NCBI RefSeq assembly: GCF_006345805.1
Contig: NC_042997.1
Location: 202,492,001-202,556,000, forward strand
DNA: 64,000 nt
Reading direction: 5' to 3'
Source: Octopus sinensis
Taxonomy: Eukaryota
Below the pieces are notes generated by a model. It ran no database searches. It was not told the origin of the DNA and saw only the letters and a list, made by a program, of their open reading frames with translations. Positions within the stretch are counted from its first letter, which is position 1. Every line of letters begins with the position of its first letter. This document shows, in pieces, positions 5,225 through 58,753 of this stretch. A program made the translations under genes and the position numbers.

Positions 5225-5570
5225 CCTACATATATGTGTCCAACATGAAACTGTCTAAACATATAAGCATGTACATATATGTACATATACATACGTGTGT
5301 TTGTGTGTGTGTATATATATATACACACATATATATGCACAAACATGTATACATATGTGTATATACACATGGTTATATATATATATACATACATATGTGT
5401 ATATATATATATATGAATGCATGTATATGTGTGTGTATATATATATATGTATATATACATACATAAATTTATATAAATATGTGTATATATGTATTTATTT
5501 ATATGTATATATATGTGTATATATATGTGTATAAATGTGTATAAACACACATATATACACACACACATGT
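5225..5570. repeat. Compound (TA)n/(TG)n microsatellite
   Basis: Directly visible; source of spurious ORFs at 5215-5568. Confidence 0.95.
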
Positions 5571-7727
5571 ATATAAGCTTTCCTGTTGCACCGAATTATT
5601 TCAACACGTACTTTCAATATCACCGTTTGTAATTTAAAAAGAAAATTCAAGAAAATAAAATAAACACTGCTACAAATTGAACTCCCTGTATCTTAATGAA
5701 TGTGATTCCACAATTTTGTTCACCTATTCCTGCCGTCTACATTGACAAGATGTTCAATATCAAATACCTTTTTAATACATTATCCATCACAACTCTTTTG
5801 TCAACTAATATATTTTGATTTTCTGCAATGAGACCAAACTCTGTGTATGTACATGCGTGTGTGTGTGTGTTTGTGCGTGCATGAACATGTGTGAATCGGT
5901 AAGCTTGTGTATGAATGTGTGTATCTGTGAATCTGATACATTTATTAGCTGTCTCTTCAAAACACAGATAACTAAAAAGAACGGAGATAAATTAGCGAAG
6001 GAAATGTATTATTTGTTCCTTTTTGGAATCAATCAAATCTTGTGTGTGTATGTATGCACTCTAAACCAACACTATTACATTAAAAATAAAAAAGAAAAAA
6101 AAGCTGAATTCAAAGCAAACATGGATATTATTATTATTATTATTATTATTTGATCTTAAATTGACATTCAATCCCAGTATGTTATCCATTGATTAAACAC
6201 TTTTAAGCTTCAATATCAGAACATCTGATGACATTCAATGATAAACTAAAATGTCTTCAACATGTCAAGTTCTTCCCTATGGTTGGCAGGTTATTTTGGC
6301 AACTAAGCATTCATATTTATTGTTGTTATTATTATTATTATCATTATTATTATTATTCTGCCTAGGTCAACTTTACCTTTCATCCTTTCGGGGTTAAAAA
6401 AATAAAGTACCAGTCAAGTGCTGGGGTTGATGTATTCAACTAATTAATACCCACACCCCTAAAATTGCAGGCCTTGTGCCAAAATTTGAAACCATTATTA
6501 TTATTATTATTATTATTATGGAATGAAAGAGACAGAAAAAAAATTTAATGATTTCCTCTACAACACAGTAATTAAATAACAAAGCATTTTTTACTGGCAA
6601 ATGACACTTGTGGAATGGAGTGTTTACTTCTAAAATGAAACAGGACTTCCATTGCATCCGAAACAAAACCAAAAAAAAAATAAAATAACCTGAAATCAAA
6701 TCAGGTTTATCTTTGTATACACAAAAATAGTTATAAAATCCAGTTGGAAAATTTTCTCCATCTTCCCTTTACAAATTGACTTATAATTTACTAGACTAAT
6801 TTGTATGCCTGGTTAATGATTTCTTGTAATTAATTCATGTATTAGAAAAATAAATAAAAGAAAAAGAAAAAAAATTATTACAGCATATCATCAAACAGAC
6901 AAATTTATTGTTTTAACAAAACAATAAATACGAATTAATTGAACTGTAGTTCAATATCAGATGAATGAATTTACAAATAAATATTGATACACAAAAAAAA
7001 AGAGTAAAAAAAAAATGAAAAAGAAACAACATACAAAAATAAATACAAATCTTGCATTGATTTTTTTTGTGGGGGGAGGTATGTATGTAAAAACTTTTGT
7101 GTTTGGTTTTATTAATTTTTTTTTAATTGTTGTTGAAAATTTGACATTTTGTTGTTGTGTTGTTATTTTTCTCTCATTTTCTCTGGAATTTTTATTTTCA
7201 TCTTGTTTGAAATATCATTATTGAAAAGAATAAAGTTTGGGGGAAAAAAATACGAAAAAAAAAACAAAGATTTTCTAACATGTGTAAATTGAAAAAAAAA
7301 AGAATATTTGTTAACCATTTTCGGTGATCCTGAAAACATCCCCTTCAGTTGTTTTACACTGAATATCCCGTGGCTAAAGGTTGGTTTCGACAACTATTTC
7401 ATAACTACTTTATCGACAACAGTTTTATTGCTTTCAAATTCTATTCTTCCCATCATTGTTTTATTGTTTCTTTCTTTGGTTCATTGGCTTATAAATTCCC
7501 TTTTTTCCTTCATTAAAATTACCGTAAAGAATCTTGATACCAAAATAGTCCTTGTATATATTCAAACACATAACATATATACATGCAAAAATATACACAC
7601 ACACTTTGTAGGGGCTGTATTAGTGTGACCCTGGTACAGCCTTCTGGCTTGCCAGTCCTCAGTCAAACTGTCCAACCCATGCCAGCATGGAAAGTGGACG
7701 TTAAATGACGATGATACATACATATTA

Positions 7728-7759
<32 letters not shown>

Positions 7760-7833
7760 ATTAGGGAGTGTAACTCCAAACTTACAGGGAAAAATTCAGT
7801 TTAGTATTAAATCAAATTTCACAGTATAAATAC

Positions 7834-8002
7834 ATAAAATATAAATTAGAGATAAAATCACTATTATGCAACTCAGTGATAGACATAAACCAATACATAA
7901 ATAACCAATATAAAAAAAATTTATATATTGGTTATGTATTGGTTTATGTCTATCACTGTTTGAGTTGCATAATAGTGGTTTTATCTCTAATTCATATTTT
8001 AT
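7834..8002. repeat. Long inverted repeat (~75-80 bp arms, ~10 nt loop)
   Basis: Left ATAAAATATAAATTAGAGATAAAATCACTATTATGCAACTCA...CCAATATA pairs with the reverse complement on the right, with few mismatches and two small indels. Confidence 0.9.
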
Positions 8003-8094
8003 ATATATATATATATAATATATATATATATTATGGAGATGTACTTGCATAGCGAGTGACTTGATCTGAGATTATGTGCTGGAATGAAAACAAT

Positions 8095-8357
8095 TGCAGT
8101 GTGGAAGGTGTTTATAAGCCATTTAAGAAACACACAAAAACCGTTAGATTCACTTCAACATTTAAATTTAATTTGTCAAAATATTTTCGTCGCTTTGAAA
8201 CCGCGACCTGTTCACTGACAAAGCTTCGTGCTGTCAGTGAACAGGTCACAGTCTCAAAGCAATGAAAATATTTTGACAAATTAAATTTAAATGTTGAAGT
8301 GAATCTAATGGTTTTTGTGTGTTTCTTAAATGGCTTATAAACACCTTCCATGCTGCA
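8095..8357. repeat. Long inverted repeat / foldback element (~125 bp arms, 11 nt loop)
   Basis: TGCAGTGTGGAAGGTGTTTATAAGCC...TTCACTGACA / AAGCTTCGTGC / TGTCAGTGAA...CCTTCCATGCTGCA. Mirrored ORFs 8074-8265(+) and 8112-8351(-) confirm it. Confidence 0.92.
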
Positions 8358-8423
8358 AGTATTTCTTGTGTGTACAGTTAGATACTTCCGTTTATAATAT
8401 GTAATGTGTAAATGTAAGAAATG

Positions 8424-8525
8424 GTATGATTAACACAAGATGCAGTTTACATAGGATGCAAATAGTCAGTGGCGACACCTGTGTAAGCAACAAATGATAT
8501 AAACTGCATCTTGTGTTAATCATAC
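8424..8525. repeat. Perfect 26-bp inverted repeat with 50-nt spacer
   Basis: GTATGATTAACACAAGATGCAGTTTA (8424-8449) is the reverse complement of 8500-8525. Confidence 0.9.
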
Positions 8526-10513
8526 ACACACACACCACACATATATATATATATACATATATAGCATCCAGCCATTTGATAGCTTCCTATCAGAAATACA
8601 ATCAAGTCATTGTTTGAAAATAGATTGGACCACATAATGACTTTAACACCCTTTACTGCACGGTGACACCTGCAATACACAGTAACTGTAACCCCTATAC
8701 TTACAGCCCCTTTATTAGATTTGATCCCCTTCATTATAATGTGACTAAACTTTTTACTACATAGACATCCCTTTTTTTCTTTTTTACATTGACTTTAGCC
8801 TTACATAAGGACATTAACCCCTTTATTATAGCGATTTTAACCCCTTTACTACTACAATAATGAATCTTTCAATTATTTCCCAACTACAATAATGAATCTT
8901 TCAATTATTTCCCAACCAAAGGGCACATAATGCCTAACAGCTTGTTGGATGATCATGGTTGGAATCAATCGGCTCAATCAAGGTTGCACAACTATTCGTC
9001 TTTTACTTACCTTACTTTTAACTATTAATTGCTTCTGTTTCTCTCTCTCTCCATAATTTCATTTCAAACCATACTGCTAACATTTTACAAAGAATAATTG
9101 TAATTCCTTCCCTTCGGCTCTTCTTCCTGTTTTTTTTCTTTCTTTTCTCCTTTAAATGATTTTCCAGTCTTCGTGTTTTTATCACAACTTAGTGACAGTA
9201 ATATCAAAAGACCACTGTGGGTTCCAACTTCAGCATAAATAAACATCTTGTTTATATACACGTTTTTGAAAGATTTGTATCATTTTAATTTAAATTTTCT
9301 TCTTTCATTTTATTTTAAATTAAAAACAACAAAAATAAAAACCTTGAATGACGGTGGTGATCCAAACTATCTTGTCGTACACACAAGCACTGAGAAACAA
9401 TAACCGTAACGTTTGTCTTCTTCAGAACATCTCAACTATAAAACAATGAATAATAATAATAATAATAATAACCACCTAAGACTGACTGCTGACATCAGCC
9501 ATGTGATATCTTTACCGTGATAAGGGATATCAGTTCTCTTCACTTTATTTTTTTTCTACTTTTGCACTGCTTGACTCAGAGTATTCTTCCACAGGTGCAT
9601 CTCTCAACAATTCTTCATATTTGTTGCAGTTTTATTTATCCATCCATCAGTAACATTTATTTTTGAAATATGTTTAATGTTCCTCCCACCAACCATCCCA
9701 TTCCCCACCTCTTTTTTTTCTTTTTGTTCCCCCCAAACCAATTCCTTTATGTCCTTACTAGAATAAAAAACCCAAAATTCATTGCTGGACAGCTTCCACC
9801 AGCACTGCCATAGCTCTCCATCAGAAAAATATTTAAAAAGAATACAAAAGACAAACTAAAATGATTTACTTTCCTTTCACATGTCTGATGAAGGCGAGCC
9901 CAAAAGCCTGCCAAAGTTAAATTATTAAAATCACCCTCCCACTTTATTATCATTAATTATTATTAATATCATCACTTATTAATTATTCTTTTTATTTGTC
10001 TGACATGAAAGTAATCCTCTTCATGCAACCTTCTCTAATAGAAGGATATATTTTACAAATTCATTCTTGCTTTAAAATAATAAAGATAACATCTGTGACA
10101 TTCGAGTTGGTCTTTGTTATTGTTTATAATTCTCTTCACTCTTATTTTATACAAATGTAATAATTTTCTATAATTACAAAATTTCAATAGGGACTTAGAA
10201 ATCTTACTAAGTTAATTTTTTTGTAAAGCCTTTATATTTACATAAGCCAGAATCCAATTTGTTTTTAGCTCCTGGTAAACCTGCTGTATAGTGTATCTGG
10301 GACAAAACTGCATGTTTTTTTTTCCCCCCTCTCACCTCTTTATTCAAGACAGAATATGAATGCAATTTGGTTGCTGTTTCTAGCAGATTTGAGACACCAT
10401 GCAGAACCTCTACACTGCATAAAATTTCAATAGAATTTAACTTTGAAATCTTATTTCAAACTTCTAAATTGACTAAATTGAAAATGAATTCCAAAAAAAT
10501 TACAGAACCTTAA

Positions 10514-10717
10514 CCCTTTCGTTACTGTATTTATTTTGAGATGCTCTGTGTTTCTTTCAATTATTTTAAATATAACAAAGAATTTAGTAAAATAATTTAA
10601 TTATCATTAAGCTATTGTTAGGAACATAAATTGCAACTAAGGTTTGGTGGTATATTTTTATGAAAACAAGACATTCGTACAACAGAGCCGGTTTTGGCCG
10701 GGTTGGTAACAAAAGGG
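10514..10717. mobile_element. piggyBac-type MITE (TTAA target)
   Basis: TTAA|CCCTTTCGTTAC...GTAACAAAAGGG|TTAA. Same family at 10965-11149 and 22798-23012. Confidence 0.85.
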
Positions 10718-10964
10718 TTAAGAATATGATAACTCACTATGATAAGACTAGTTTGTTGCAACTATATACTTTCAGGTAAAATAGATACATACCCTAGGCA
10801 TGAATTTTGACAGTTTATTGAAGCTAAAAATAAGTACCACATTTACTGCCTGGTTTATATACAGAATGAGACAACTGGATACAGCTGTTCAGATGCTGAA
10901 AATAGGTATGGCTGGGAGAATAAGTGCCTTGTTGTCCTAAGATTCAATTTCAAAATTAGCTTAT

Positions 10965-11149
10965 CCCTTTTGTTACCATATTTATTTTGAGATGCTGTTT
11001 CTTTCAATTAATTTTAAATATAAAGAATTTAGAAAAATAACTTAGTCACAATCACTTAGCTTAATGATAAAACTAACGTTTGGAATATTTTAATTCAAAA
11101 CTTATGAAATGACTAGAGCTGGTTTCAACTTGGTTGGTAATCAAAAGGG
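10965..11149. mobile_element. piggyBac-type MITE with TTAT target duplication
   Basis: TTAT|CCCTTTTGTTACC...GTAATCAAAAGGG|TTAT. The paralogous empty site AAAATTAGC-TTAT-CAGTGTA is at 50886-50889. Confidence 0.85.
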
Positions 11150-14100
11150 TTATCAGTGTATGAATTAAAAAAAAAATCTCATACTCAATCTCACTGGGAT
11201 CTCCAGTCTGTTCAAGTATGAATATATTTTTCTAACCTTAGAATGACATTTCCTCAACATTTCTGATGTTAATCAGATTTGTTTAATCTTTAAATTTTTG
11301 TGTATTTTTACAATATAACCCTTTAGTTACATTTCTGATCAACACCGCTTTTGTCGTAATTAATTTTGAATGAAATTTTGACAGAATGTGTTTAAATCTC
11401 TTTATAAGAGAAAAATTTCTATCTTTGGTAGCTGGTTCATACTGATTGGTGTAAGTGTCGATTGCAAATCCTGACAGATATTACATACAAATGCATCACC
11501 AATCCACTTGATGTTACATCCACTTTCATAAATCCCCTTTGGCCTACTTTAAATGCTAATTAACTCCATCTTTCTACCCAGTTCATTCCATTTATCTCTG
11601 AAGCTGACATGGATATCGCTTTCTGCATGCACATTTTTTCTAGCTTCAACATGCTAGAAAATACAGCCAAATCTTCCCAAAACCTTTACACCTGAAACAG
11701 GTTTTTTTTTTTTTCAAAACTTTTTGTTACTTTCCATTTCCACTTTTGTACCACAAAACTTCAAGCAAACTACAATGCTCACACATACACAAAGTCTTTG
11801 ATGCAAAGAAAAAAAATAATTCAGAATGGTCATGACTGGAATTCTTTATCAAAAGTCTGCTCCATTATGATTGATGGTGGGGGGTGGGGGTTAGACAAGG
11901 TTTGGAAATTTAAAGTTTTGATTGAAGCTCATTCTTGCATCTGCCATGGATGATCCTGCAACAATAAATTCAGTGACAAATATAGCTTCCACTCTCCAAC
12001 TGTTGCCAGTCTTAAATACTATGATAAAGGAAAGCAATAAACAGAACTTCACTGAACAACCATTTACATCAAAGAATTCACATGTTCTAAGTAGACGTTT
12101 ACACTTAGAAATGATCAGGGGACATAACATTTTTCTTCAATGCTTACCATATTTCTCTAGTGCAGCTGTGCTGGGCACTGCATTGAAGGATTTTAGTCCA
12201 ACTAAGTAACCCGTTATTTTTTTCTTTCCAAGACTGGTACTTTACCAGTCATCTTTGCTAAGTTATAGAGAATGTAAACAAACCAACATCAAAATATGTA
12301 TATACAAAGCTTCCATCTATCCTATTCACTCACAAGGTATCAGTCAGCTTAGGAGCTGTAGAAGACCTAGCCAGACATGCTTGTGCCTGGAAAGATTTTT
12401 TCTTAATGCATTATATAGAATCTCTTGTAGACATGCTCTAAAGCCAGCTGAGTGATTAAGAAGTGCTATGTTTCAACTGGATATCTGGGATTTAGTCCCA
12501 CTACAGCTCCAGGACAAACTCTTCAGTGGATAAGGTAGACAGACTGGGAAGAAGCCTGTCAGATACATGGGAGCAAGTTCAGGTCTTATTTTGAAAGTTG
12601 CACAAACTGTTAACTAATGTCATCATTTAAACAATAATGTCTATTTACAATCAATAAAATCACATCTAAAAAAAAAAAAAAGTGTTGAGGGAGTTGGCAA
12701 CAACAGCAACCACTCCATCTATGGTTCAAATTCCACAAGCTGTATCCAACTATCCCAATGTGTTTTTTTTTTTCCCCCCATCAAGAGTACATTGTGCAAT
12801 ACCTTCCATTAATCCCATACTTAAATGGATTAATACAGGTTAGCAGATAGCTAGATTTGTTCCAAGCTTGTCACTACAGAAAGTGACACTTAGATGCCAA
12901 ACGATTACTTGAAAATCCAATAAGAATTTCTTCGTAACTATTGAAAGACCACCACCATTATTACTTAAAATTCAATGCAGAGCTAAAGATAAACCAAACT
13001 TGCAAGCATGAGCAATAACAAGATTTCAAGGGCAGTAACGGATGCAGATTTTTCCGTCCTCGCAACTGATGCAGTTGAAAATTCCATTTCCCTGATGCTT
13101 TGCTGTCAAATGTAGCTAATTGCTCTATCAATATTACAAAAGGTCACATCTTCCATCATAGCAGTTTTCTCAAACATGGCTACTTAGATCATTTAGCCTG
13201 TGCACATAAAATGAGATACCTGAAGAATGAAATAAATCACTTTATACCTGGTTCATAAATTACTTTCCTACCTCCTCCAAAGCATGCTAACCAAGGAGTT
13301 GTGACTACACCTACAGGAACCAGCTGAACCAATTTCATTTTTTCTTCTGGCCTATATCACAAGGCCACTGGCAATCATGTCAGGTCCAGCTATTTATGAT
13401 CAACTTTCACCACTCCCTAAAATTAATTTTTTCAACCATCATTCAGTATAATCCACTTATGCTTAATCTTTCAGAATATCATTCACAAAAACTGAAAATG
13501 CTTGCTTAGTCAGAGACTCTCAAACATTTCAAAAATATCTAGCTCATGAATACACATACCTGTGCATCTATGTAGTCTCACAATGTGGAGAATTATTACC
13601 TACTTCAGGCATGCTCAATTCCCAGATCATAGCTACAGGAACTAAGGTATCAGACAGCCAGTTAAGCTTGCCTGACAGTACAAGTTAAGCTAAGACTGGG
13701 AGACAACATAGCAAAATGGTAAAATTTCAGCACCCAAGCATGTTATTTTGCTCTGCAGTAGCTGCATCTATATGTATGATATATGAAGCACTAAATTTCA
13801 AAGGTCCAGGAATATTTTGCTACTTTTATGCAAAAAGACCACATTTTGTTTACAACAATATCAATGATAAATCTTGCATCACAAAATAAAACATTCCTTG
13901 TAAATTTCTAGCCTGATTCTTGAGAAACATTCATTACAAAGCTTTCAGAAAAAACATTTTTAACAAGGTAATTTTTTTTAAAGTTGACATGTCAGGTTAA
14001 ACTACAAATATGAAAAACTGATGGAGAATCCATTGATGTGACATTAGAACCATTTTTTCAGAACAGGGCACTTGTAAATGGAGGAAACAAATCGAAAAAA

Positions 14101-14491
14101 TTTGGAAATCCCAGTCAGCATCGAAGCTACACAAAAATCTTATGTACTGCATTGCTATCTCCTCTAAAAGACAAGCTTACTATAGAGGAGATTCTTGGCT
14201 ACCCCAGTAGGACAAGAAAGGAGAGGAAGAGAAAATGGAGTGAGTGAAACGGGGGAGGTAGATATGTCGGCATAAACTACAAATATGTGAGTGGAAGGAC
14301 CTGCAGCAGATGGTGATCACGGGCAGCTAGGAAAAGGGGTTGCAGTGTATTTTGACACAGGACAGATCATCTGAGAGAAAGTCAAGTGGTAATGGAATAT
14401 TCCTCTATGGATGGATGGCCACAAGCTCAAATCAGGTATATATTATATATATTAAAAAAAAAAAAAGGAAGGCAGGCATTTAAAAAAAAGT

Positions 14492-14497
14492 TTTATT
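14492..14497 (-). promoter_or_regulatory. Candidate polyadenylation signal AATAAA of eIF1 copy A
   Basis: TTTATT on + strand ~226 nt past the stop; conserved in copy B (54098-54103). Confidence 0.55.
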
Positions 14498-14723
14498 AAT
14501 TGCATACAAAAAAAGTAATAAAGCACTAAAAGACAGCCATTCCCAAATAATGGGATAAATTTACATAGGTATCATGGCCAGTGATTCAGCCGAATTCAGT
14601 GAAGATCTAATTTAAAAGAAAAAATTAGGATGGACAAATACATCAACGGCCAATAAATACATTGCTACCTGTTTTGAAGGTCCAAGTACATAGTAGCAAT
14701 AGGCGCTGGATCAGCAGAGGTAC

Positions 14724-16284
14724 TTAGAAACCATGTACCTAAAACGAAAGGAAACATCACAAGATAATTACAGGAAAGAATTTAAATGACATACATACAA
14801 ATGGTCTTCAATAAAAAATAGAGAAATAACCATAGTTACCTTTAACTGTTCATCTTTGGCAATCTTGCGACACTTCAGAAACTCCTTTATATTGGTTCTC
14901 TGATCTCCTTGCAACTGTATAACTTCCCCGTACTCAGGATGGTCCACTACAGTACCATTACAGGCGAATTCCTGTTAAAAAGCACAACTTCCGTTAACAA
15001 TACAGAAACACTTAAAAATTAATACAACAATCGACAAAAGAAATTACGTCATAAAAGCACAAGAAGAAAAAGACATTCGATGCCAACCAAACTTACTCTC
15101 TTGCAGGCCTTGACTATCTTTTTTAAGTCGAATTGCGTCGAGATTCCTTGCACAGTAGTTAGGGTTTTTCGCCCGTTTCTCTGTTGAATCCGAATATGAA
15201 TTATACTGTCTTGAACGCCAGCACAACCACCAACTTCATCGCTGGCAGTCTTCAGATCTGAAACGACCAAAAATTCCTCAACTCAAAGATTCCACTACAG
15301 CTGCCTGACTGCGCATGCGCCTGCCAGCCCACTTTAGACACAAATGGCAACAGTTTGCTTTGCACAATATATATATTACATTTTAAAACAAATTTGCAAT
15401 CAAGAAATAAACCAATAATGCATAATAAAATCTGTGCTATCCAGTGATCAGATGAACCACTGCAAAAAAAAAAAATGCAGCTGCAGAGAAGTGCTTGGAA
15501 CTGTGTCTATAGCCACTCCTCAAAGACAAAAGATGGCTAGTTAGATATACACTTAATATATATATATTTTTTTTTTTTGCAAAACTGGATTTTTGGGGTT
15601 AAAGGGAAAGAAGAAGGAAAGATGACCAAGAGCAGTTTTAATTTATATGCAACTGACATCACGAGTAAATAAAATTCCTTTACAAAAAATTGTTTTTCAT
15701 TTGTAGATTTCAAATAAAAGATATAATTTATCAAATTGGAAATTAGTCCCATTTTTTTTTTTACCTCATCAGTAGAAAAAGAGGATATTAAGTGTTAAGT
15801 GTAATATAATTCCTATTAGGTTCAAATAAAATTATGGTTAGGAAATGGAATATATTGCAAAAATGAAGAAATTTCTTCATTTTTGCAATATATTTTGCAA
15901 TATACTACATAGAGTAGTAGTGATTCTGTTTCTAAGACCAATATTGATTGCTCAGCTATAGACAATCCACAAAGGAGTGGATGCGAGATTGCAAATTGCA
16001 AATATTTAAAAATGCATAAGCACTGAAAGGTAATAACGAGTGGAAATTTGAACAAAAACGAGTAAAAGATAAATTTTGGATGAAAGATGAAAAAAGATGG
16101 CGGAGGAAGAGAGCAAAGTAGGCCATAAATAAATAAATCAATCTTGAAATCCATGAAGAAAAACGGTTCTTCATCATTGCATTTCGTAATATTCGATTCC
16201 AGAGGTCTAATTTATGGGAATGGTTAGGATTTTGAGTGAAAATATTCGATACTTACCTAAAGAAAGGCTCGGGATACAGGTCAT
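14724..16284 (-). CDS. EIF1: Eukaryotic translation initiation factor 1 (eIF1/SUI1), copy A, 111 aa, 4 exons
   Basis: Exons 16284-16257, 15257-15097, 14971-14840, 14738-14724 (28+161+132+15=336 nt), all GT-AG, phases 1/0/0. Protein MTCIPSLSLDLKTASDEVGGCAGVQDSIIHIRIQQRNGRKTLTTVQGISTQFDLKKIVKACKREFACNGTVVDHPEYGEVIQLQGDQRTNIKEFLKCRKIAKDEQLKVHGF carries the SUI1 signatures. Confidence 0.95.
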
Positions 16285-16299
16285 ACAGCAGGTAGTGTT

Positions 16300-16700
16300 T
16301 ATTCCACCAAATGGTATCAAACCCCGACAGTGAGGGGTGGCAAAGAGTTTTTTCTCGAGTTAAAAAGGAAAGCGAAGGCTAAATCGATACACACAAAGGG
16401 AAGACCTTGTGTGTATGTATCAACTTGTTGATGGGTTTTAAAAAACAGGAAGAATTCAAGAAGAGCGAGTAAGAAATGAAACACAGTTGGGTTGCAGAAA
16501 AAGCGAAATGAACTGCTCGTTGAGCAAGCAGGAAACAGAGTGGCTCGGAGATCAGAGAGGAATGGCTGAGAGTGACAAAGTAAGGGTCTTTTATTGCGAA
16601 TGGTGACGTTTCAACGAACTTCACATTTCGACCAATCAAAACAAAGTCTCACAAAATGTTCGAGAATAACGCAGATAGTTAGTAACCAAATTTTTTTTTT
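16300..16700 (-). promoter_or_regulatory. 5' UTR / core promoter region of eIF1 copy A
   Basis: CpG-enriched relative to background. CCAATCA box at 16632-16638 is conserved in copy B (58097-58103). TSS not determinable from sequence. Confidence 0.55.
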
Positions 16701-18229
16701 ACTTTACTGAATATTTATTTTTTTCGCTTCACTGAAATGTAATTTCGTTGAATTAAATCTTATTTTGAACGTAAAACTTTATTTTATTTTACTATTATTC
16801 AATTTTTCTCGTGACAATGCTATTTCTCACCTACTCAGGTGTCTTCTTTTGCCGTCTAAATTCTAAATATCTAATTTAGACAGTCCATGACAGACATATT
16901 ATTAGTATTAGTAAAATTATTTATGTAACGGTTTCACAGCTGAGCCAAAATTGCCATGATTAATAAGATAAATAACGTGTGTCTGCAAGTAGCAGTACAC
17001 AGAGGGAGTTCGAATAGAATTTTTATCGAATTTGTTGGTTATTGATGATATATTGAATAATTTATTTGCAAGCAATCACTATCCAAAATCTATTCACAGT
17101 TTTTTGTTGTTTTTTTTTTACCTTTCCACTCCTTTCACATGACTAATTGTACATATTTAATTTTCTTCATGATTGATGTCATGATTTCCAGGAAGAAAAA
17201 AAAAAGCTCCACCCTTAAATAATTAAAGCATGATAAAAGTAGGTATTTCTCAACCATAAAAATAATGATAGCGTAGGGAGCAATCTGTATTTCACTTTTG
17301 TTTTACATGAAAAATATAACTAGTTATGGCGAACCTCTTAAATCCAGTCATCTGCTCGTATTAAGTAAGTATATTGTTTTCTACTGAAATTGACTGGAGA
17401 ATAATTTACACAATATTGTAACTTTTTCTCAATCATTCGTGTTATATGTTTCTTCTCTGTAACTGACCAAAAATTAAAGTAATTCTAGCTTGTAGAAATA
17501 CACTATACACACTTTAAAATTGCGCATATGTACATGTCTTCACTTATCTCTGGCATTAAACTGCGGCCATGCTGGGGCACCGCCTTGGAAGATGTATGAG
17601 ATCGTTTCATTTTCCTGCATTGTTTTTATTTTTAAATACCCCCAGGATCATTTTATTAGAAATAATTTCTAATAATCGCTTAGTTCTAAATATAATCACA
17701 AACAAGATTTAAAATTATAATGATAATTACAATTATCTACATGCGTTACACACGAGAAAACTGTACAGTCAATATATTTATCAATTATTCTATTATCTCG
17801 ATATTATTTAGTTTTAATCGATCTCTTTAAAAGTCAATAAAAATGTATATTTTTTTCTGTTAGTCTGTCAACAAGAATTCAGTCGTATATTACATAATAA
17901 TTATAAAGATGACAACTCATGACAGATATTTAACATTTTTATCAATTGTAAATTATATAATTTAAAGTTAATTTCATTGTTTACTTTTCTTGTGTGCATT
18001 TGCATGACAGTTGTTTGACTCTTTGGAAAAAGAATTTTGTGAAGAATATCTAATTTGCAAAAGAATATTTAGTGGAACCGAAAAGCTGTAGGAGGTCTGT
18101 TGGAAGAAGAAAAGACGACATGGAACCAAGGAAGATGAGTAATGGCTACTGTACGCAGACCGACTGAGTGTGCTGAACATTTAGCTGATGAACATCTCAC
18201 CAAATAATAATCCCTTCTACTACAAGCAC

Positions 18230-18575
18230 AAGACCAGAAATTTTGGGGAAGGAAGCTAGTTGATTACATTAACCCCAGTTCTTGACTTGCTCCTCGACGG
18301 AATGGGAGATCCGAAGATGGACGAAATGCCGCTAAGCATTTTCCCCGACCTGTTAAGGATTCTACCAGCTTGCTACCTTAATGATAATAGTCCTTTCGAC
18401 TATAGGCGCAAAGCAAGGCATTTTGGGGAAGGAGGCTTGTTGATTACGTCGATTCCAGTATGTAACTGGTACTTATTTTACCGACCCCGAAAGGATGAAA
18501 GGCAGAGTCGACTTTGGCGTAATTTGAAGTTATGGCGGACAGAATGCCGCTAAGCATTTTGCCCAGCGTGCTACG
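18230..18575 (-). mobile_element. tRNA-type SINE family 2 fragments
   Basis: Reverse complement matches the 43410-43640 SINE (GGCAGAAACGTTAGCACGCCGGG...TTCAAATT...GACTTTGCCTTTCATCCTTTCGGGGTCGAT). Absent at the paralogous position in copy B. Confidence 0.75.
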
Positions 18576-19673
18576 GAGACTCTCGAATCTGTACAGAAAA
18601 CTGAATAACAAGCCCCTCATAGATTCAGGAAAGCAGTTCTAACAACATGATCGACTGACAGACCAACCAAATCTAAATTTCGGAGAAAGAAAAAGAACAT
18701 GTAAGGGTTAGGGAGAAAATAGGTGAAATTATCTTTGACTTACAAAAAAAAAGTATTTAAAACATATATTTCTGTATTAAAAGGTGAAATACAATTATAG
18801 GAGGCATGCAGAGACGGAAACCAACACCATTTTCACACACACCCCCCAAGAAGTGATAGTTTTGAGGAGGTGATTCAAAGAACCAAATCTACTGAACTTG
18901 CTCCTCTGTTTCATAATACATGTCTATTTTTAAGAATAATAGCTGGTGATTTGAAAGCAGGGTGTGAATAGGGAAGAGGAGATTTCTTTTGACTAGATTA
19001 CAGGTTCCATTTGTCATTTAAGATGGCTGTAATTGATTGTATTGACTAAGGAGTTTTTGTTGTTTTTTTTTACTTTGGAAGAATGAAAGTTGACTTGGCA
19101 ATGACAACAGTGAAATATTACTTTAAGATCATTTATGGGGTTGTTACACTGTCTCAATAGTTATTTTTGTGTTGTCTGGCACCATTACACTCAATTTGAT
19201 GAAGTGAGCATTGACAACATTTAATAAAGAAATAGGTGGTGAAAAAAAGCCCATTATTTATGCTAGTATGAGAGACAACTGAGTTTTGGCCTTATTGAAG
19301 CTCTTTAGCAAAGCATAAACATCGTACTTAGTGGAATAGAGTGATACAATAATCACTAAGTGTACACTTATAGGTCTAGAAGTATTCAGACAATGGGATA
19401 CTGCAATTCATTCATTTACTTTTACGTCTGTTTTTCCTAGCAAGCATGGCTTAGATAAGTATATTATTGGAGCATAGTTTCACAGCTGAATGCTTTCCTG
19501 TTGCTAACCCTTACCTGTTTCTCAAATAAAGGATATCTTATACCCCATGCTTTTGAAGATGCAAAGCCAGTATGGATGATTTGTTGATGGGAAATAATAG
19601 CAACATTACTGCTATTTTGGCAAATAGAAACAAACAAAAACATACATGCAAGCATATATATATATATATATAT

Positions 19674-21666
19674 ACAAATAACTACAGAGGTATCAAGCTG
19701 TTGGACCAGGTGATGAAGGTTACGGAGAGGGTCATAGCCCAACTAATTAGAGAGAGAGTTAGTTTAGATGAGATGCAGTTTGGGTTTGTGCCAGGGAAAA
19801 GTACTACTGATGCTATATTCCTGGTAAGGCAGCTGCAGGAGAAATACCTAGCCAAAGATAAGCCCCTGTACCTGGCTTTTGTTGACATGGAGAAAGCCTT
19901 CGACAGGGTCCCCCGATCCCTTATCTGGTGGGCAATGAGGAAACTAGGGATAGATGAATGGTTAGTGAGAGCTGTGCGGGCCATGTACAGGGACGCCGCT
20001 AGTAGGGTGAGGGTTGGAAATGTGTACAGTGAAGAATTCGGGTAGAGGTAGGAGTCCACCAAGGCTCAGTACTCAGCCCCCTCCTATTTATCATAGTCCT
20101 CCAGGCAATAACGGAGGAATTCAAGACAGGATGCCCTTGGGAGCTCCTCTATGCTGATGACCTTGCTCTAATTGCTGAGTCGCTATCAGAACTGGAGGAG
20201 AAGTTTCAGGTGTGGAAACAAGGATTAGAATCGAAGGGCCTCAGAGTCAATCTAGCTAAAACCAAAGTCGTAATCAGTAGGCAGGTAGATGGCCCTGCTC
20301 GATCTGTAGAAAAGGTGTAGGTAGAAACTCTATAAGATGCACCAAGTGTAAGCTATGGACACATAAGAGATGCAGCAATGTCAAAGGAAGGCTAACTAGG
20401 AAGATGGTTTTTGTATGTGGCAGATGCTCAGGAACAATAAACACTGAAAATGCTCTGAGACCAACTTCCGTCACTTTCCAGGGAGAAAAACTAGAAATAG
20501 TTGATAGTTTCCGTTACCTAGGTGACCAAGTCAGCAGCGGGGGCGGGTGTGCTGAAAGTGTAACTGCTAGAGTAAGAATAGCTTGGGCAAAGTTCAGAGA
20601 GCTCTTACCTCTGCTGGTGACAAAAGGCCTCTCGCACAGAGTGAAAGGCAGACTGTATGATGCGTGTGTACGAACAGCCATGCTACATGGCAGTGAAACA
20701 TGTGCCGTGACTGCTGAGGATATGCGTAAGCTCGCTAGAAATGAAGCCAGTATGCTCCGATGGATGTGTAATGCCGGTACTCACACTTGGCAGAGTGTAA
20801 GTACCTTGAGAGAAAAGCTGGACCTAAGAAGCATCAGTTGTGGTGTGCAAGAGAGACGTTTGCGCTGGTATGGTCATGTGGCGAGAATGGATGAAGATAG
20901 TTGTGTGAAAAAGTGCCACACCCTAGCGGTTGAGGGAACCTGTGGAAGAGGCAGACCCAGGAAAACCTGGGACGAGGTGGTGAAGCACGACCTTCGAACT
21001 TTAGGTCTCACTGAGGAAATGACTAGAGACCGAGACCTCTGGAAGTGTGCTGTGCGCGAGAAGACCCGGCAGGACAAGTGAGTCCATAACCCGTGGCCTT
21101 CTACATGGGATGGAGCCAGCCTACGTATGCATACCTTCCCTTCTTGGGACACAAAACTCTACTTGTGAAGACGTGATGAGGCAAGTGAGGATCAGAATCG
21201 AAATCGATCAATGGAAATTGTGGATGTGCTACCAGTGCCGGTGGCATGTCAAAACTGCTTGTGAAGACCCGTTGAGGCAAGTGACGATCAGAATCGAAAT
21301 CGATCAATGGAAATTGCAGATGTGTTACCAGTGCCGGTGGCATGTAAGAGAACTTACCGTTGCCAGCACCGCCCCGTTTCGTGTCCGTTGCCAGCCTCGC
21401 CTGGCCCTCGTGCCGGTGGCACATAAAAAGCACCATCCGTTCGTGGCCGTTTGCCAGCTCTGTCTGGCACCAGTGCGGGTGGCACGTAAAAAGCACCCAC
21501 TACACTCACGGAGTGGTTGGCGTTAGGAAGGGCATCCAGCCGTAGAAACACTGCCAGATTTGACTGGGCCTGATGAAGCCTTCTGGCTTCACAGACCCCA
21601 GTAGAACCGTCCAACCCATGCTAGCATGGAAAACGGACGCTAAACGATGATGATGATGATGATGAT
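19674..21666 (+). mobile_element. 5'-truncated RTE-clade LINE: RT and C-terminal ORF with frameshifts, plus structured 3' UTR ending in (GAT)n
   Basis: NYRGIKLL...QFGFVPGKSTTDAIF...FVDMEKAFDRVPR; HQGSVLSPLLF and LYADDLAL in the shifted frame; RYLG and RRLRWYGHV...GRGRPRKTW in ORF 20404-21081. Inserted in a TA microsatellite. Confidence 0.92.
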
Positions 21667-23820: not shown

Positions 23821-23821
<1 letters not shown>

Positions 23822-24176
23822 CTTTTACTTGTTTCAGTCATTTGATAGCGGCCATGCTGGAGCACCGCCTTTAGTCGAGCAAATCGACCCCGGGACTTAT
23901 TCTTTGTAAGCCCAGTACTTATTCTATCGGTCTCTTTTGCCGAACCGCTAAGTGACGGGGACGTAAACACACCAGCATCGGTTGTCAAGAAATGCTAGAG
24001 GGACAAACACAGACACACATACATATATATACGACAGGCTTCTTTCAGTTTCCGTCTACCAAATCCATTCACAAGGCATTGGTCGGCCCGGTTCTATAGC
24101 AGAAGACACTTGCCCAAGATGCCACACAGTGAGACTGAACCCGGAACCATGTGGTTGGTTAGCAAGCTACTTACTA
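23821..24176 (-). mobile_element. tRNA-derived SINE family 1
   Basis: Reverse complement of the 44632-45025 copy (B-box GGTTCAGTCC-like head, GACTAAAGGCGGTGCTCCAGCATGGCCGC tail). Confidence 0.85.
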
Positions 24177-53812: not shown

Positions 53813-54330
53813 TTAAAGGCAAACATTTTACCAAATTTTCCAGCATTTTAAAAATCGTTACAAAAGCAATTGATCTCAACAGAAATGTGGTAAAAGAATT
53901 GAGGACTATTTTACCAGTGAAAGTTTTGACTTCAATATTGTAGAAGTGTTTCGACACAACAGATCATGTGTGTGGGAGAAGTGGGCACAGTCGTAAAAGA
54001 CATGCCTGTATGGATGGATGGTCGCGATTTTACTGAGCTCACATCAGGTATATGTAATATATAAAAAAAAAGGAAGGCAAGCATTTAAAAATTTTTTTTT
54101 ATTAATTGCATACAAAAAATGTAATAAAGCACTAAAAGACAGCCATTCCCATATAATGGGATAAAATTTGCATAGGTATCATGGACAGTGATTCAGCTGA
54201 ATTCAGTGAAGATCTAATTTAAAAGAAAAAATTAGGATGGACAAATACATCAACGGCCAATAAATACATTGCTACCTGTTTTGAAGGTCCAAGTACATAG
54301 TAGCAATAGGCGCTGGATCAGCAAAGGTAC

Positions 54331-57300
54331 TTAGAAACCATGTACCTAAAACGAAAGGAAACATCACAAGATAATTACAGGAAAGAATTTAAATGACATA
54401 CATACAAATGGTCTTCAATAAAAAATAGAGAAATAACCATAGTTACCTTCAACTGGTCATCTTTGGCAATGTTGTGATTCTTCAGAAAATCCTTTATGTT
54501 GATTCTCTGATCTCCTTGCAACTGTATAACTTCCCCGTACTCAGGATGGTCCACTACAGTACCATTACAGGCGAATTCCTGTTAAAAGCACAACTTCCGT
54601 TAACAATACAGAAACACTTATCAAAATTAATACAACAATTGACAAAAGAAATTACGTCATAAGGGACAAGACACTTGATGCCAACCAAACTTACTTTCTT
54701 GCAGGCCTTGACTATCTTTTTTAAGTCAAATTGCGTCGAGATTCCTTGCACAGTAGTTAGGGTTTTTCGCCCGTTTCTCTGTTGAATCCGAATATGAATT
54801 ATACTGTCTTGAGCGCCAGAACCACCACCAACATCGTCGCTGGCAGGCTTCAGATCTGAAACAATAAAAAATTCCTTAAATCAGATTTCAGTAACAGCTA
54901 CCTGACTGCGCACGCACCTGTCAGCCTACTCTAATTAGACACAAATGACAACAGTTTGCTTTACATTCACTTTAAAATGTAAGTTTTCAATCAGAAATAA
55001 ACCAAAAATGCAGGGTGTCCACAAATTACCTTTACAATTTGAAAAATTTAGAAAAAAATGAAAGTTCTTGTGCAAAACTTTGTGAATTGTGGATGGTGGT
55101 AAACTTAACTGTCTACTTGCAGTACGAATAGACTTAGTTGGAGTACGATGAAATGCTGCTCGAATTCGCTCAACATCTTCTACAGATGTTCTTGGTCGAC
55201 CAGCCCCTGATCTGTGTAGTACGCTCCCTGTTTCCATAAACTTTTTATACCAGGCACGGATGCTTACACGACTCGGTGGTTCATTCCCATACATTGCCCG
55301 GTACTTCCGCTGGACCTGAGTGTCTGATTTGGTCTCTATGAACCAAGATACACATTGTGCTTTCTCTTGTGGTGTTGTCATTTTCATTAAAAGTCAGGGA
55401 TAATAATATACACCTTCAAAGACAAATGAAAGCGATCCAATTATTAAAACAAAGTACATCAATTAACACTTTCATAATATTTAACATGTAATGAAGTTGA
55501 TTGATAGATCTCAACTTTACTAGATACAAGATAATTTATGGACACGCTGCATAAAATAAAATTTTCTATACTACTTACTGACTAGATAAATAACTGAGAA
55601 TGTACATTATTTATAAAGTCTAATCCAATATCGTCACTCTTAGACAAAGGTGCCTAAGAACAGTAAAAGCTATAAAAATAAGGATGATGGGTAGTTAGAT
55701 GTAGACTTAAATATATAAGTATGCCACATATATAAAAGTTCTGACCGTATTTAAAGGCTCAATTAAACAATACGAAAAAAAATTTGGTTTATTTAATTGC
55801 CAAGTCTTCCCTGTGACCTCATTTCACCTGTCAATGAGCTATTTAATAACACGTTTATAAGATTCTTTAGGTTTAGAAGTGAAAAGGGAAATTGACTCAT
55901 TTTCGACTTCAAGTCTTAATCCACTCAAATGATTTTAACTTCTAAAGAGGTATTAATCTGTAGGTGCGGGATCCAGTGAATATGGTGGGAGATGCATAAT
56001 TTTCTATGAGCTCTTAGGTCTTTTCTGTAGGGCGAGGTCAAGTGTTATCATGATGAAGCATGACTCCTTTTCTGTCTGCTAATGATGGATGCTTTTGTTG
56101 CAAAGCTACTTTCAAGCGTGTTAGCAGTATACATCGGCTGTTCTTCTTGTTAGATTATCGTTTGAAAGCCATGATTAATTATTTCACGCATATCCCACCA
56201 GACACCCAGGAAAACCTTCCTTGGAAGCAGATCACTTCAGGGCTGTTGAACTGGATCTTCACCACCACTGTGCCACTGACGTTTTTGCTTTACATTATGG
56301 TAAAGTATCCACTTTTCTTTTTCAGTAATGACTTTTCAAAAAAGGCATTTGCCACTCACGAGATCCATTTTCTAACCTTTGACACTTTTACAAAGCCTTT
56401 TCAATTAACGGTGAATGGTGGTATGGCTCACGTTGAAGTCTGTGCTTAGTTCCTGAACTGTAACAATCAGATATGTTTCCAACAGTAGGTTCCAACGCAT
56501 CAAGATCCAACCCTCTTGGGCGCCCTTTCTTGGTTCATTCTGAAGGCTGTAGTCCAGGTTTCTGTATCATGAAAAACATCTGCTGCACGTTATTTGAATC
56601 ACTACGCCATCACCATAAGTGTTTGGGAATGATTTTGCTGCTACACTTGCATTATTATTGCCTGTCTTTCGTTTTCACCCGCAGAAACGTCAAACTCGGG
56701 CATATGGGATCATATGATTGTTCGTGAATTTCCGTAATTTTTTAATTTACTATTCGCGCTCCGTTTTCAGGTCAATGTATTTGTAGTCAGTCACATGCAC
56801 ACATACAAATGTATTTTTGTATGTACATGTATATACACACACACACCAATATGATAGAGTCTGACATATCAAGACATTTCTGGGGTAGAAAACGGAAGAT
56901 GGCTGCATTATTCCCTTTTTGAAATTCATAAAGCGACGATTAAGTGCTTTACTCCGAGTGAACATGGGACCAATATAAGTTCGATTATGGTAAAATTGAC
57001 AAAATCGGCAAAATTTTTCGATATGGAAATTGATATAATTTCGCCGTATTTCAAATAGAGTCGAAAATCCTTATAATTTACCAAATCGAAAAGCAGTCAA
57101 TTTGTTCTCATCGGTTAAAAAAAATAATATAAAAAGGTTATAAATGTAATGTGATTTATATTATTACATATAACAGTCGGAGTTTAATATAGGGAAGGCG
57201 GTTAGACACATAGGGGAATATTGTAAAAGTGAGTAAAGTAAAATGAGGAAATACCGATTATGGTGAATAGTACATTTAATCACTAAATAGAACAATATTG

Positions 57301-57831
57301 AATATATGCTGATAACAACCAACTAATGGATTTCAGACTAGAAATATTTAAAAATGCAGAGGCACTGAAAAGAAGGAATAAAGAGGCAAAAATAAGGAAT
57401 AAAACGAGGAAGTGAAATGGGTTTTTGGCGGAAGTTGTGACCGGTTTTTCATGGCGTGATCCAGAAGTTAGGAAATTTTTGAAAACTTTTCTTTTCATAA
57501 TCGTATGAAATCCCGTGTGGAGAACACAAATTCGCTAATTTTTTTCTGAAAATACTAAACATGATCGAAAGTTGTGAGAAGTTATAAACTAATTTCGCCG
57601 GATTAAAAAAAAGAATTTTTTTTTTTTTTGTTGAAGATGAAAAAACATGGCGAAGAAAGCAAAGAAAAGCCATGAAGAAATGAATCATCGCGAAATCCAT
57701 GAAGAAAACGGTTCTTCATTTTTATATTTCGTAATATTTGATTTTAGCGGCCTATTTTTATAGGAATGGTTAGGATTTTTAAGTGAAAATATTCGCTACT
57801 TACCTAAAGAAAGGCTCGGGATACTGGTCAT
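54331..57831 (-). CDS. EIF1: Eukaryotic translation initiation factor 1 (eIF1/SUI1), copy B, 111 aa, 4 exons
   Basis: Exons 57831-57804, 54855-54695, 54578-54447, 54345-54331, all GT-AG, same sizes as copy A. Protein MTSIPSLSLDLKPASDDVGGGSGAQDSIIHIRIQQRNGRKTLTTVQGISTQFDLKKIVKACKKEFACNGTVVDHPEYGEVIQLQGDQRINIKDFLKNHNIAKDDQLKVHGF. Confidence 0.95.
55011..55549 (-). mobile_element. Internally deleted Tc1/mariner-superfamily element (DUF4817-type HTH) in eIF1-B intron 1
   Basis: TIRs CAGGGTGTCCACAAATTACCTT and (rc) CAGCGTGTCCATAAATTATCTT. ORF from 55387: MTTPQEKAQCVSWFIETKS...SIRAWYKKFMETGSVL..GAGRPRTS...KSIRTASRQL..P.STIHKVLHK; catalytic domain deleted. Confidence 0.9.
55850..56760 (-). mobile_element. 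Decayed mariner transposase remnant in eIF1-B intron 1
   Basis: Minus-strand pieces EPRKGRPR, ITEKEKWILYHNVKQKRQW, PRKVFLGVWWDM, VMLHHDN, PPYSLDPAPTD-YLFRS; ends not resolved. Confidence 0.8.
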
Positions 57832-58132
57832 ACAGCAGGTAGTGTTATTCCACCAAGAGATATCAAACCCCGACGGTGAGGGGTGGAAAAGAGTTTTTTC
57901 TGGAGTTAAAAACGGGAACGAAGACGAACCGATACACACAGAGGAAGACCTTGTGTGTATGTATCAACTTGTTGATGGGTTTTGAGAAGAAAAACAGAAG
58001 AATTCAAAAGAAAAAATAGAGTTGGGGGGAAAAACTGAAAATTAAGTTAAGAAGATAAGAAACAAACAAGCGCGAAGACCAGACTTAACATTTCAGCCAA
58101 TCAGAACCAAGTCTCACTAAAAGTTCGAGAAT

Positions 58133-58753
58133 AACGCAGAGAGTTTAGTAACCAATCCTTTTTTTTTTAATTAACTATATTTATTTTTTCATCTCACCGA
58201 AATGTAATTTCAACGAATTAAATTTTATTTTGAACATGAAATTTTATATTATTTTTGCTATTATTAATTTTTCTCATAACAAAGCTTAACGCAGAGAGTT
58301 TAGTAACCAATCCTTTTTTTTTTTTATTAACTATATTTATTTTTTTCATCTCACCGAAATGTAATTTCAATGAATTAAATTTTATTTTGAACATGAAATT
58401 TTATTTTATTTTTGCTATTATTAATTTTTCTCATAACAAAGCTTAACGCAGAGAGTTTAGTAACAAATCCTTTTTTTTTTAATTAACTATATTTATTTTT
58501 TCATCTCACCGAAATGTAATTTCAACGAATTAAATTTTATTTTGAACATGAAATTTTATATTATTTTTGCTATTATTAATTTTTCTCATAACAAAGCTTA
58601 ACGCAGAGAGTTTAGTAACAAATCCTTTTTTTTTAATTAACTATATTTATTTTTTTCATCTCACCGAAATGTAATTTCAATAAATTAAATTTTATTTTGA
58701 ACATGAAATTTTATATTATTTTTGCTATAATTAATTTTTCTCATAACAAAGCT
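58133..58753. repeat. Tandem array of four ~155-bp units upstream of eIF1-B
   Basis: Units start 58133, 58288, 58445, 58600 (AACGCAGAGAGTTTAGTAAC...CTCATAACAAAGCT). A single homologous unit is at ~16668-16812 in copy A. Confidence 0.95.

Follow-up and report, generated by a model that had tools for sequence, protein, structure and literature searches.

Two tandem eIF1 genes in Octopus: asymmetric evolution and amino-acid differences that persist despite gene conversion

The N-terminal tail of the initiation factor eIF1 and the basic residues of its helix alpha1 contribute to its contacts with eIF2-beta, eIF3c, eIF5 and rRNA. The factor sets the strictness of start-codon selection, and its dose controls the usage of upstream open reading frames (uORFs) and of non-AUG starts throughout the genome. 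Natural pairs of eIF1 paralogs with a proven specialisation are, to our knowledge, rare, eIF1.2 from Toxoplasma being the clear example. In this protein, the F97L change of helix alpha2 alters the handling of near-cognate codons, and in yeast the replacement of ISQLG by ASQAA lowers the affinity of eIF1 for the 40S subunit, speeds up its release and raises non-AUG initiation (PMC11116398). With respect to its partners, eIF3c has been placed near residues 50-56 of yeast eIF1 (PMC8599844), and the autoregulation of eIF1 through the poor context of its own start codon is conserved in other eukaryotes (PMC8892498). The present analysis deals with two eIF1 genes, copy A and copy B, located in a stretch of 64,000 nucleotides from Octopus sinensis (contig NC_042997.1, positions 202,492,001 to 202,556,000 of the forward strand), hereafter called the window, to which all coordinates refer unless another record is named. 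These genes form a real, functional and lineage-specific eIF1 pair that evolves asymmetrically, and the lasting differences between them, all of which affect amino acids, suggest, without proving it, that two working protein forms are maintained.

Two eIF1 genes in the window

A tblastn search of the window, with eIF1 as the query, located the loci, which were subsequently spliced by hand. Two eIF1/SUI1 genes were found, both on the minus strand, each consisting of four exons separated by GT/AG introns and encoding 111 amino acids with a KVHGF end. The limits of copy A are those given in the initial annotation of this DNA.

16284-14724, minus strand: copy A, whole gene (tblastn and manual splicing)
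16257..16284, minus strand: copy A exon 1, ATG, codons 1-9 plus 1 nt
15097..15257, minus strand: copy A exon 2, codons 10-63, with the remaining N-terminal tail, beta1 and beta2 with the RNGRK loop, and helix alpha1 to R63
14840..14971, minus strand: copy A exon 3, codons 64-107, with beta3 and beta4 with the HPEYG loop, and helix alpha2
14724..14738, minus strand: copy A exon 4, VHGF and TAA stop
57831-54331, minus strand: copy B, whole gene (tblastn and manual splicing)
57804..57831, minus strand: copy B exon 1, carrying C3S
54695..54855, minus strand: copy B exon 2 (manual splicing)
54447..54578, minus strand: copy B exon 3 (manual splicing)
54331..54345, minus strand: copy B exon 4, including the TAA stop

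Over the 111 codons, A and B differ by 18 bases distributed in 17 codons, 14 of them nonsynonymous and 4 synonymous (D16, F52, N90 and L106). The resulting proteins are 88% identical and differ by 13 residues, namely, from A to B, C3S, T13P, E17D, C21G, A22S, V24A, R63K, T89I, E93D, C97N, R98H, K99N and E104D. The loops RNGRK (36-40) and HPEYG (74-78) are the same in both copies, cysteines 3, 21 and 97 of A are all missing in B, and A reads KCRK where B reads KNHN. The initial annotation had listed the same changes and counts, the identity of both loops and the three additional cysteines of A, and the codon comparison bears it out exactly on each of these points. According to the Nei-Gojobori method, pN amounts to 0.053 and pS to 0.056, corresponding to a dN/dS ratio (omega) of 0.95.

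Both products match the Pfam SUI1 family (PF01253), with 96.5 bits for A and 99 bits for B as compared to a gathering cut-off of 25.5, and their nearest solved structures are the human eIF1 chains 4kzx and 2if1 (E=1e-38). The AlphaFold2 model of copy A exhibits the order beta-beta-alpha1-beta-beta-alpha2-beta, built up from five strands (residues 29-36, 40-46, 69-74, 78-84 and 106-108), two helices (54-65 and 88-97) and a flexible N-terminal tail, the residues 1-25 of which display a predicted local distance difference test (pLDDT) score below 50 and are considered disordered. RNGRK, HPEYG and the C-terminal KVHGF, which A and B have in common, correspond to invariant columns across 37 homologues. 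Nearly all of the best 120 named protein hits are annotated as eIF1/SUI1, and the SUI1 domain occurs in all 120. Taking into account this single-domain organization of 111 amino acids, the eIF1 best hits and a start codon in poor context, A and B are eukaryotic cytoplasmic eIF1 and not the SUI1-domain proteins DENR, MCT-1 or eIF2D.

The DPF of the FDPF motif of the N-terminal tail, found in 90 of 100 aligned metazoan sequences, occurs neither in Octopus A and B nor in Argonauta or in a cephalopod transcript (L006). Since this motif is typical of the family without defining it, its lack is no bar to eIF1 membership. In cephalopods, the region devoid of DPF corresponds to codons 8-13 of the tail, and two gastropod sequences lack the motif likewise. 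A hidden canonical Octopus eIF1 with FDPF was looked for and none occurred among the best 120 hits, within which no Octopus eIF1 gene other than A and B is apparent. One of the copies being an orthologue of vertebrate eIF1B is also ruled out, given the identity of A and B and the introns and untranslated regions (UTRs) they have in common. No hit from outside the octopods is as near to A as B is, and hits from outside the cephalopods are mostly 62-82% identical to A; because A and B are nearer to each other than to any other eIF1, the Octopus duplication is independent of that which gave rise to vertebrate EIF1 and EIF1B.

Coding sequences (CDSs) for comparison were rebuilt from Octopus bimaculoides (L001 for A, L002 for B), O. 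vulgaris (L005, for B and A), the Argonauta hians gene (L003) and the cephalopod transcript L006. The exact A protein occurs in O. sinensis, O. vulgaris and O. bimaculoides. Orthologues of B are found in all three species, the B protein of the window being O. sinensis XP_029637913, with an intact open reading frame (ORF) and all GT/AG splice sites intact. The order and the orientation of A and B are also the same in the three genomes, and in each of them B has an intron 1 of ~2.9 kb as opposed to ~1.0 kb for A. A single eIF1 gene and no second copy was found in Argonauta hians. When the window is compared with itself, the region 14347-19671 appears homologous to 53946-63995 with an identity of 70% to 91%; the pair results from a segmental duplication in the Octopus lineage, with a unit of at least ~5.3 kb and two copies that share their orientation and are separated by 39.6 kb. 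Existing annotations include both genes, and RefSeq and ENA class B as protein-coding, with isoforms in which B exon 1 is used; the A and B protein records consist of genome annotations only, with no Logan transcriptome contigs among them.

Amino-acid differences within a converted tract

A six-sequence MAFFT alignment of the whole genes was unreliable over intron 1, where 1 kb of A and 2.9 kb of B are non-homologous, and block-wise alignments were used instead. Four-taxon site patterns were counted on the reliable flanks of intron 1 (310 nt) and on introns 2-3 (201 nt). The intron 1 flanks contain 21 paralog-fixed and 5 multi-state sites, as compared to no paralog-fixed site and three species-grouping sites in introns 2-3. 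Intron 2 groups by species and not by paralog, with A and B of O. bimaculoides differing at 2 of 119 sites as opposed to 9-11 between species. Sites that group by species are found in introns 2-3 and also in the 5'UTR, and the last ~130 nt of the 5'UTR of the O. bimaculoides B copy are A-like. When introns 2-3 are pooled with the synonymous sites, none out of ~276 positions is paralog-fixed, against 26 out of 310 in the intron 1 flanks (p=4e-8). This grouping by species, together with the absence of silent paralog-fixed sites, is strong evidence that the stretch from exon 2 to the 3'UTR was homogenised by gene conversion between A and B, to the exclusion of intron 1 and the promoter. The 3' halves of the two genes are ~98% identical.

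The coding sequence retains quite another pattern. Eight of its sites are paralog-fixed, all nonsynonymous (codons 3, 17, 21, 22, 24, 63, 93 and 98), and the three multi-state sites diagnostic of the paralogs are nonsynonymous as well (codons 89, 97 and 104), whereas the four synonymous differences of the window pair are all lineage-specific. Within the homogenised tract, 10 of 250 nonsynonymous sites but 0 of 276 silent sites keep the paralogs apart (Fisher p=5e-4). The initial annotation had named an omega well below 1, once gene conversion was accounted for, as a point that would speak against its reading; allowing for conversion instead strengthens the excess of nonsynonymous over silent differences. 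The differences concentrate in two patches.

15215..15249, minus strand: divergence patch 1, N-terminal tail, codons 13-24; 6 of the 18 differences; contiguous with the old intron 1 divergence
14843..14895, minus strand: divergence patch 2, helix alpha2 and the next loop, codons 89-106; 9 differences in 53 nt (7 nonsynonymous, 2 synonymous)

Intron 3, which adjoins patch 2, displays no difference in 101 nt. Both short introns beside the patches have been converted, while the unconverted patches lie within exons. About ten paralog-diagnostic amino-acid differences therefore persist in three species despite conversion, from which we infer, with moderate confidence and from the substitution pattern, that selection preserves the protein differences against conversion. 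The explanation we prefer, with a probability of about 0.55, is that A and B are functional duplicates of the Octopus lineage which evolve asymmetrically, and in which selection holds two protein forms against the homogenising effect of conversion.

When placed on the AlphaFold2 model, six of the differences fall in the disordered tail (3-24), one at the end of alpha1 (63), three in alpha2 (89, 93 and 97), two right after alpha2 (98 and 99) and one in the alpha2-beta5 loop (104). R63 of A is the sole difference at a near-invariant column, occupied by K in 98 of 99 homologues. When the sequences are aligned by hand at the conserved F94, yeast ISQLG93-97 falls opposite Octopus K96-I100, and residues 97-99 consequently belong to the equivalent of this segment, so that the fidelity-relevant surface is not wholly invariant between A and B. 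The earlier statement that the changes spare the fidelity core holds for both decoding-site loops and fails for residues 97-99. A separate reading, in which A/G base differences would correspond to hard-wired RNA editing, found no support, half of the changes being transversions (kappa 1.5).

Asymmetric evolution and regulatory regions

Between O. sinensis and O. bimaculoides, the CDS of A differs by a single synonymous nucleotide, with no nonsynonymous change, whereas that of B shows 14 sense-codon differences (8 nonsynonymous, 6 synonymous) and a change in the stop codon, i.e., 15 of 336 positions. The B sequence thus evolves ~15 times faster than that of A, and the ratio of CDS changes, 1:14 for A:B, departs from that of 15:25 in the intron 1 flanks (p=0.04). 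These noncoding flanks served as the neutral yardstick, with a divergence between both species of ~4.8% for A and ~8% for B. The 3'UTR was dropped from this use because its first ~100 nt (14723-14620 and 54330-54227, minus strand) do not differ between the two Octopus copies and Argonauta (L003 11201-11300), an identity which, being shared by Argonauta, reflects constraint and not conversion. Relative to the neutral expectation, A shows 0 nonsynonymous changes instead of 12.6 (p=3e-6) and B 8 instead of 21 (p=0.001), and the 3'UTR of B shows 6 changes across species instead of 19.6 (p=3e-4). Copy B is accordingly constrained and not a pseudogene, though far less constrained than A. A custom GY94/F3x4 model with four branch classes fits better than a single omega (p=5.5e-4), and gives an omega of 0.21 for the background, 0 for the A crown and 0.40 for the B crown, the two post-duplication stems reaching the upper bound.

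The polarity of the changes was placed by hand on the codon table, with Argonauta and L006 as outgroups. Derived states in A are G21C, K63R, N89T, D93E, the change of residue 97 to C, and D104E; those in B are S3, D17 and A24, C3 being the ancestral octopod state lost in B. Later changes of B comprise P13, I89, N97 and N99 in the O. sinensis/O. vulgaris lineage, and O. bimaculoides acquired R59, T60, G97 and E104. Derived states are therefore found in each of the copies: those of A are all old, A having been static since O. sinensis and O. bimaculoides separated, and B continues to change. The proposal of the initial annotation that A is the more derived copy is right with respect to R63, E93, E104, C21 and C97, but it overlooks that A keeps the ancestral promoter and remains static, and that B is the fast-evolving member. 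Its argument that DDQLK is the usual form is a weak one, as position 104 is E 49 times and D 38 times in the metazoan sample. Codon 97 (14873-14871 and 54480-54478) is the most changeable site of the protein, its residue differing from lineage to lineage: C in copy A, S in Argonauta and, within copy B, N for both O. sinensis and O. vulgaris and G for O. bimaculoides. Every Octopus codon is one step away from an inferred AGT.

The regulatory regions of both genes comprise the following features.

16285..16637, minus strand: copy A 5'UTR and proximal promoter, with a CCAAT box at 16637-16624 and the hairpin CCCCUCACUGUCGGGG at 16337-16322
57832..58102, minus strand: copy B 5'UTR with a truncated promoter, which keeps the CCAAT box (58102-58089) and lacks the 62-nt piece
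16557..16618, minus strand: 62-nt core-promoter piece, carrying GAAACGTCA, AATAAAAGA and CAGCCATTCC
14491..14723, minus strand: copy A 3'UTR to an AATAAA-type signal (14503-14491), with a predicted stem-loop at 14702-14660
54097..54330, minus strand: copy B 3'UTR, sharing with A the stem-loop (54309-54267) and the poly(A) signal (54109-54097)
58132..58753, no strand assigned: 155-bp tandem array upstream of B, 4 copies, 96% alike

Homology to the Argonauta promoter extends over ~388 nt in A and only 168 nt in B. The 62-nt piece is present in A and in Argonauta and deleted from B in all three Octopus species. The 155-bp unit upstream of B reaches 7.6 copies in O. vulgaris, is absent from O. bimaculoides and occurs as a single copy upstream of A (16667-16821). 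Judging from these promoter sequences, the two genes are likely to be under divergent transcriptional control. The start codon lies in the poor context CUGCUGU-AUG-A, with U at -3 and A at +4, which is the same in all seven octopod genes, and this pyrimidine at -3 fits the autoregulation of eIF1 by poor context. A small GC hairpin, CCCCUCAC(U/C)GUCGGGG, located ~40-55 nt 5' of the weak AUG (16337-16322 and 57883-57868, minus strand), is kept in the seven octopod genes including Argonauta and may modulate scanning into the poor-context start. The predicted 3'UTR stem-loop, CUAUUGCUAC...GUAGCAAUG, is also kept in the unrelated cephalopod transcript L006 (~773-860), its sequence being invariant and hence showing no covariation. 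An Rfam scan of the whole window gave no family at threshold, leaving these conserved UTR elements without a match to a known RNA family.

Downstream of A, the flank at 2-11974 (minus strand) and its Argonauta counterpart share several collinear blocks, which are 68-95% identical. This Argonauta flank harbours a large cadherin gene, and L003 20499-21200 matches positions 2-365 of the window. The suggestion that A is the parental copy because of Argonauta synteny on both sides was withdrawn for its upstream half, the match at 19742-20769 being a long interspersed nuclear element (LINE) reverse-transcriptase fragment, which matches L003 2524-3574 and hence indicates no synteny. Promoter homology and downstream collinearity alone remain, and the latter would be expected of whichever copy in a tandem pair lies downstream. 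ORFs derived from transposable elements occupy much of the spacer and of B intron 1. Named from their translations only, those at 19572-21081 (plus strand), 41499-41948 (plus strand), 40293-40724 (minus strand) and 54935-55387 (minus strand) comprise LINE reverse-transcriptase fragments, an AP-endonuclease-like fragment and two helix-turn-helix/transposase-like ORFs, one of these two lying inside B intron 1. A dispersed repeat of ~380 bp, probably a short interspersed nuclear element (SINE)-like element, occurs in the spacer at 23821-24178, 38086-38459, 44643-45036 and 46833-47221, in both orientations and with copies 80-93% alike.

Alternative explanations and known eIF1 pairs

The strongest alternative to selection for two forms, and a serious one even if it is not the explanation we favour, is that of a redundant duplicate under relaxed constraint, in which B is a dispensable back-up, the differences are neutral and devoid of any specialisation, and the patches represent a chance mosaic of conversion. 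Several observations weigh against two selected forms and in its favour. Twelve of the 13 differences occupy the most variable columns among 99 metazoan eIF1s (mean entropy of 2.13 versus 0.80 bits, p=2.6e-5), where relaxed drift would have placed them too; the clustering around an invariant fidelity core, as it was originally described, thus mostly corresponds to the ordinary constraint pattern of eIF1. Several replacements, of the K/R and D/E type, are conservative. With ~10% fixed differences over 47-53 nt, the alpha2 patch is as dense in differences as the old intron 1 divergence, and could be a chance unconverted remnant. The 14:4 split of the substitutions, deemed unusual for eIF1 in the initial annotation, is indeed improbable for an omega of 0.05-0.1 (p<=1e-5) or 0.21 (p=0.003). 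However, the omega of octopod eIF1 is already ~0.4 (Octopus versus Argonauta), a background under which a binomial estimate made by hand, and not a tool output, gives p~0.1 for 14 out of 18, so that the pairwise ratio alone is unremarkable for octopods. The B crown, with a nonsynonymous to synonymous ratio of 8:6 and an omega of 0.35-0.40, is separable neither from 1 (p=0.10 for omega 0.40) nor from the A crown (p=0.21). Moreover, knockouts indicate a large degree of redundancy between human eIF1 and eIF1B (PMC5570006).

Positive selection on the post-duplication branches, which had also been put forward, is only suggestive and unproven. An omega of 1 is rejected for the two stems jointly (twice the log-likelihood difference 5.3, p=0.02, with or without L006), although gene conversion confounds this test, each stem taken alone is not significant (p=0.14 for A, p=0.08 for B), and a simple count yields (1-0.227)^11 = 0.058. 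This nominally significant excess on the stems is nevertheless one of the points that a redundant duplicate leaves unexplained. The others are the ten nonsynonymous versus zero silent paralog-fixed sites of the homogenised tract, the unconverted patches confined to exons next to two converted short introns, R63 of A at its near-invariant column, and the absence of change in A at tolerant positions, where ~4 changes are expected by a hand estimate (~92 tolerant nonsynonymous sites, 4.8% divergence).

Another arrangement, which we regard as improbable, is that of a single transcription unit, in which B exon 1 splices either to B exons 2-4 or to A exons 2-4, 42.5 kb downstream, so that the two copies would serve as alternative 3' cassettes and not as separate genes. 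A chimeric product (P0001), consisting of B exon 1 with S3 followed by A exons 2-4, is annotated in O. sinensis (XP_036364247, "isoform X2") and in O. vulgaris (CAI9716644), and implies, as a matter of annotation only, read-through splicing over the 42.5-kb spacer from 57831 to 15257 (minus strand). The exon 1 encoding S3 occurs in the window only at B, the splice phases are compatible and the O. vulgaris annotation is that of one gene spanning B through A. Against this stand the own conserved promoter and own exon 1 of A and its annotated A-only product, the fact that the support consists of annotation, and the common occurrence of read-through chimeras of tandem duplicates as low-level products.

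That B is a decaying or unexpressed pseudogene, whose high proportion of nonsynonymous changes would result from lost constraint, is very improbable. The loss of 62 nt of conserved core promoter, the ~15-fold faster CDS and the B-crown omega not formally different from 1 agree with decay. But the introns are kept, the ORF and the splice sites are intact in three species, and residues 25-58 and 64-88 show no change, K59R and A60T of O. bimaculoides being the exceptions. The AUG in its poor context and the hairpin of the 5'UTR are retained, and the RefSeq and ENA records, with their isoforms using B exon 1, are those of a protein-coding gene that is presumably expressed. The relaxed pseudogene envisaged at the outset is thus contradicted by the constraint on the coding sequence and the 3'UTR of B, and two maintained protein forms are favoured over it. 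Finally, an assembly artefact, in which alleles or haplotigs would have been wrongly placed in tandem, has nothing specific in its favour besides the ~98% identity of the 3' halves and is effectively refuted by three independent assemblies from three species with the same order, orientation and diagnostic differences, as well as by the unequal lengths of intron 1 and the promoter deletion of B in all three.

Returning to two forms maintained by selection, copy A has kept the ancestral promoter, acquired a few amino-acid changes and then become frozen. Copy B has lost 62 nt of the ancestral core promoter and keeps changing at tolerant surface positions, with conservation of the splice sites, the core of the fold, the AUG in poor context and the elements of the 3'UTR. 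Conversion has repeatedly homogenised the stretch from exon 2 to the 3'UTR, and selection would keep the ~ten diagnostic residues. The resulting forms would have the same decoding loops and differ in the N-terminal tail, the C-terminal end of alpha1 (K63R), and alpha2 with the ISQLG-equivalent segment. A different affinity for the 40S subunit or for partners could then provide each form with its own set-point of start-codon stringency, expressed from different promoters, and the two copies, both endowed with the weak AUG context of eIF1 autoregulation, may cross-regulate. Functional divergence of A and B is plausible on these sequence grounds. The complete scheme, combining two stringency set-points, differences selected against conversion, separate promoters with a partial read-through unit of B exon 1 and A exons 2-4, and tuning through the A:B ratio, is more tentative and, as a whole, rather doubtful. 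If the set-points are real, leaky scanning and the usage of non-AUG starts and uORFs could be tuned by tissue or stage via the A:B ratio, which would confer an adaptive value on the pair; if the differences are neutral, the pair is an ordinary lineage-specific duplicate.

A search of the available literature found no paper dealing with Octopus eIF1 paralogs or with conversion-resistant coding patches in eIF1. As a general pattern, tandem duplicates under concerted evolution may keep conversion-resistant coding patches, in which silent sites are homogenised and a few replacement differences persist. The Octopus pair resembles this pattern in both respects, and represents a clean and small example of amino-acid differences outlasting conversion within a converted tract.

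Among the described eIF1 pairs, vertebrate EIF1 and EIF1B resemble the Octopus genes in being two full-length genes, with proteins 92% identical in human (PMC5570006) as compared to 88% in Octopus, which both keep the poor-context AUG used in autoregulation (PMC8892498) and for which a functional overlap is suspected. Unlike the vertebrate pair, the Octopus copies derive from an independent duplication, lie in tandem on one chromosome and undergo ongoing conversion, with one frozen copy and one fast copy, and one truncated promoter. The eIF1.1 and eIF1.2 of Toxoplasma gondii also result from a lineage-specific duplication, with one specialised paralog, and F97 of alpha2 lies beside the ISQLG segment, within which the Octopus differences 97-99 occur (PMC11116398). 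The Toxoplasma case relies on genetic and biochemical proof, whereas the evidence for the Octopus pair is that of sequences; the Toxoplasma paralogs are also much more divergent and have not been reported as tandem or converting. The yeast sui1-93-97 mutants indicate that 40S affinity and stringency are altered by substitutions in the terminal part of alpha2, at a distance from loops 1 and 2 (PMC11116398), and Octopus varies there too. The yeast changes are engineered and lead to loss of function; those of Octopus are natural variants kept within each paralog (CRK in A; NHN, NHK and GHK in B). In this respect, the Octopus pair represents a compact natural experiment, in which only 13 residues differ, outside the decoding loops and including the end segment of alpha2.

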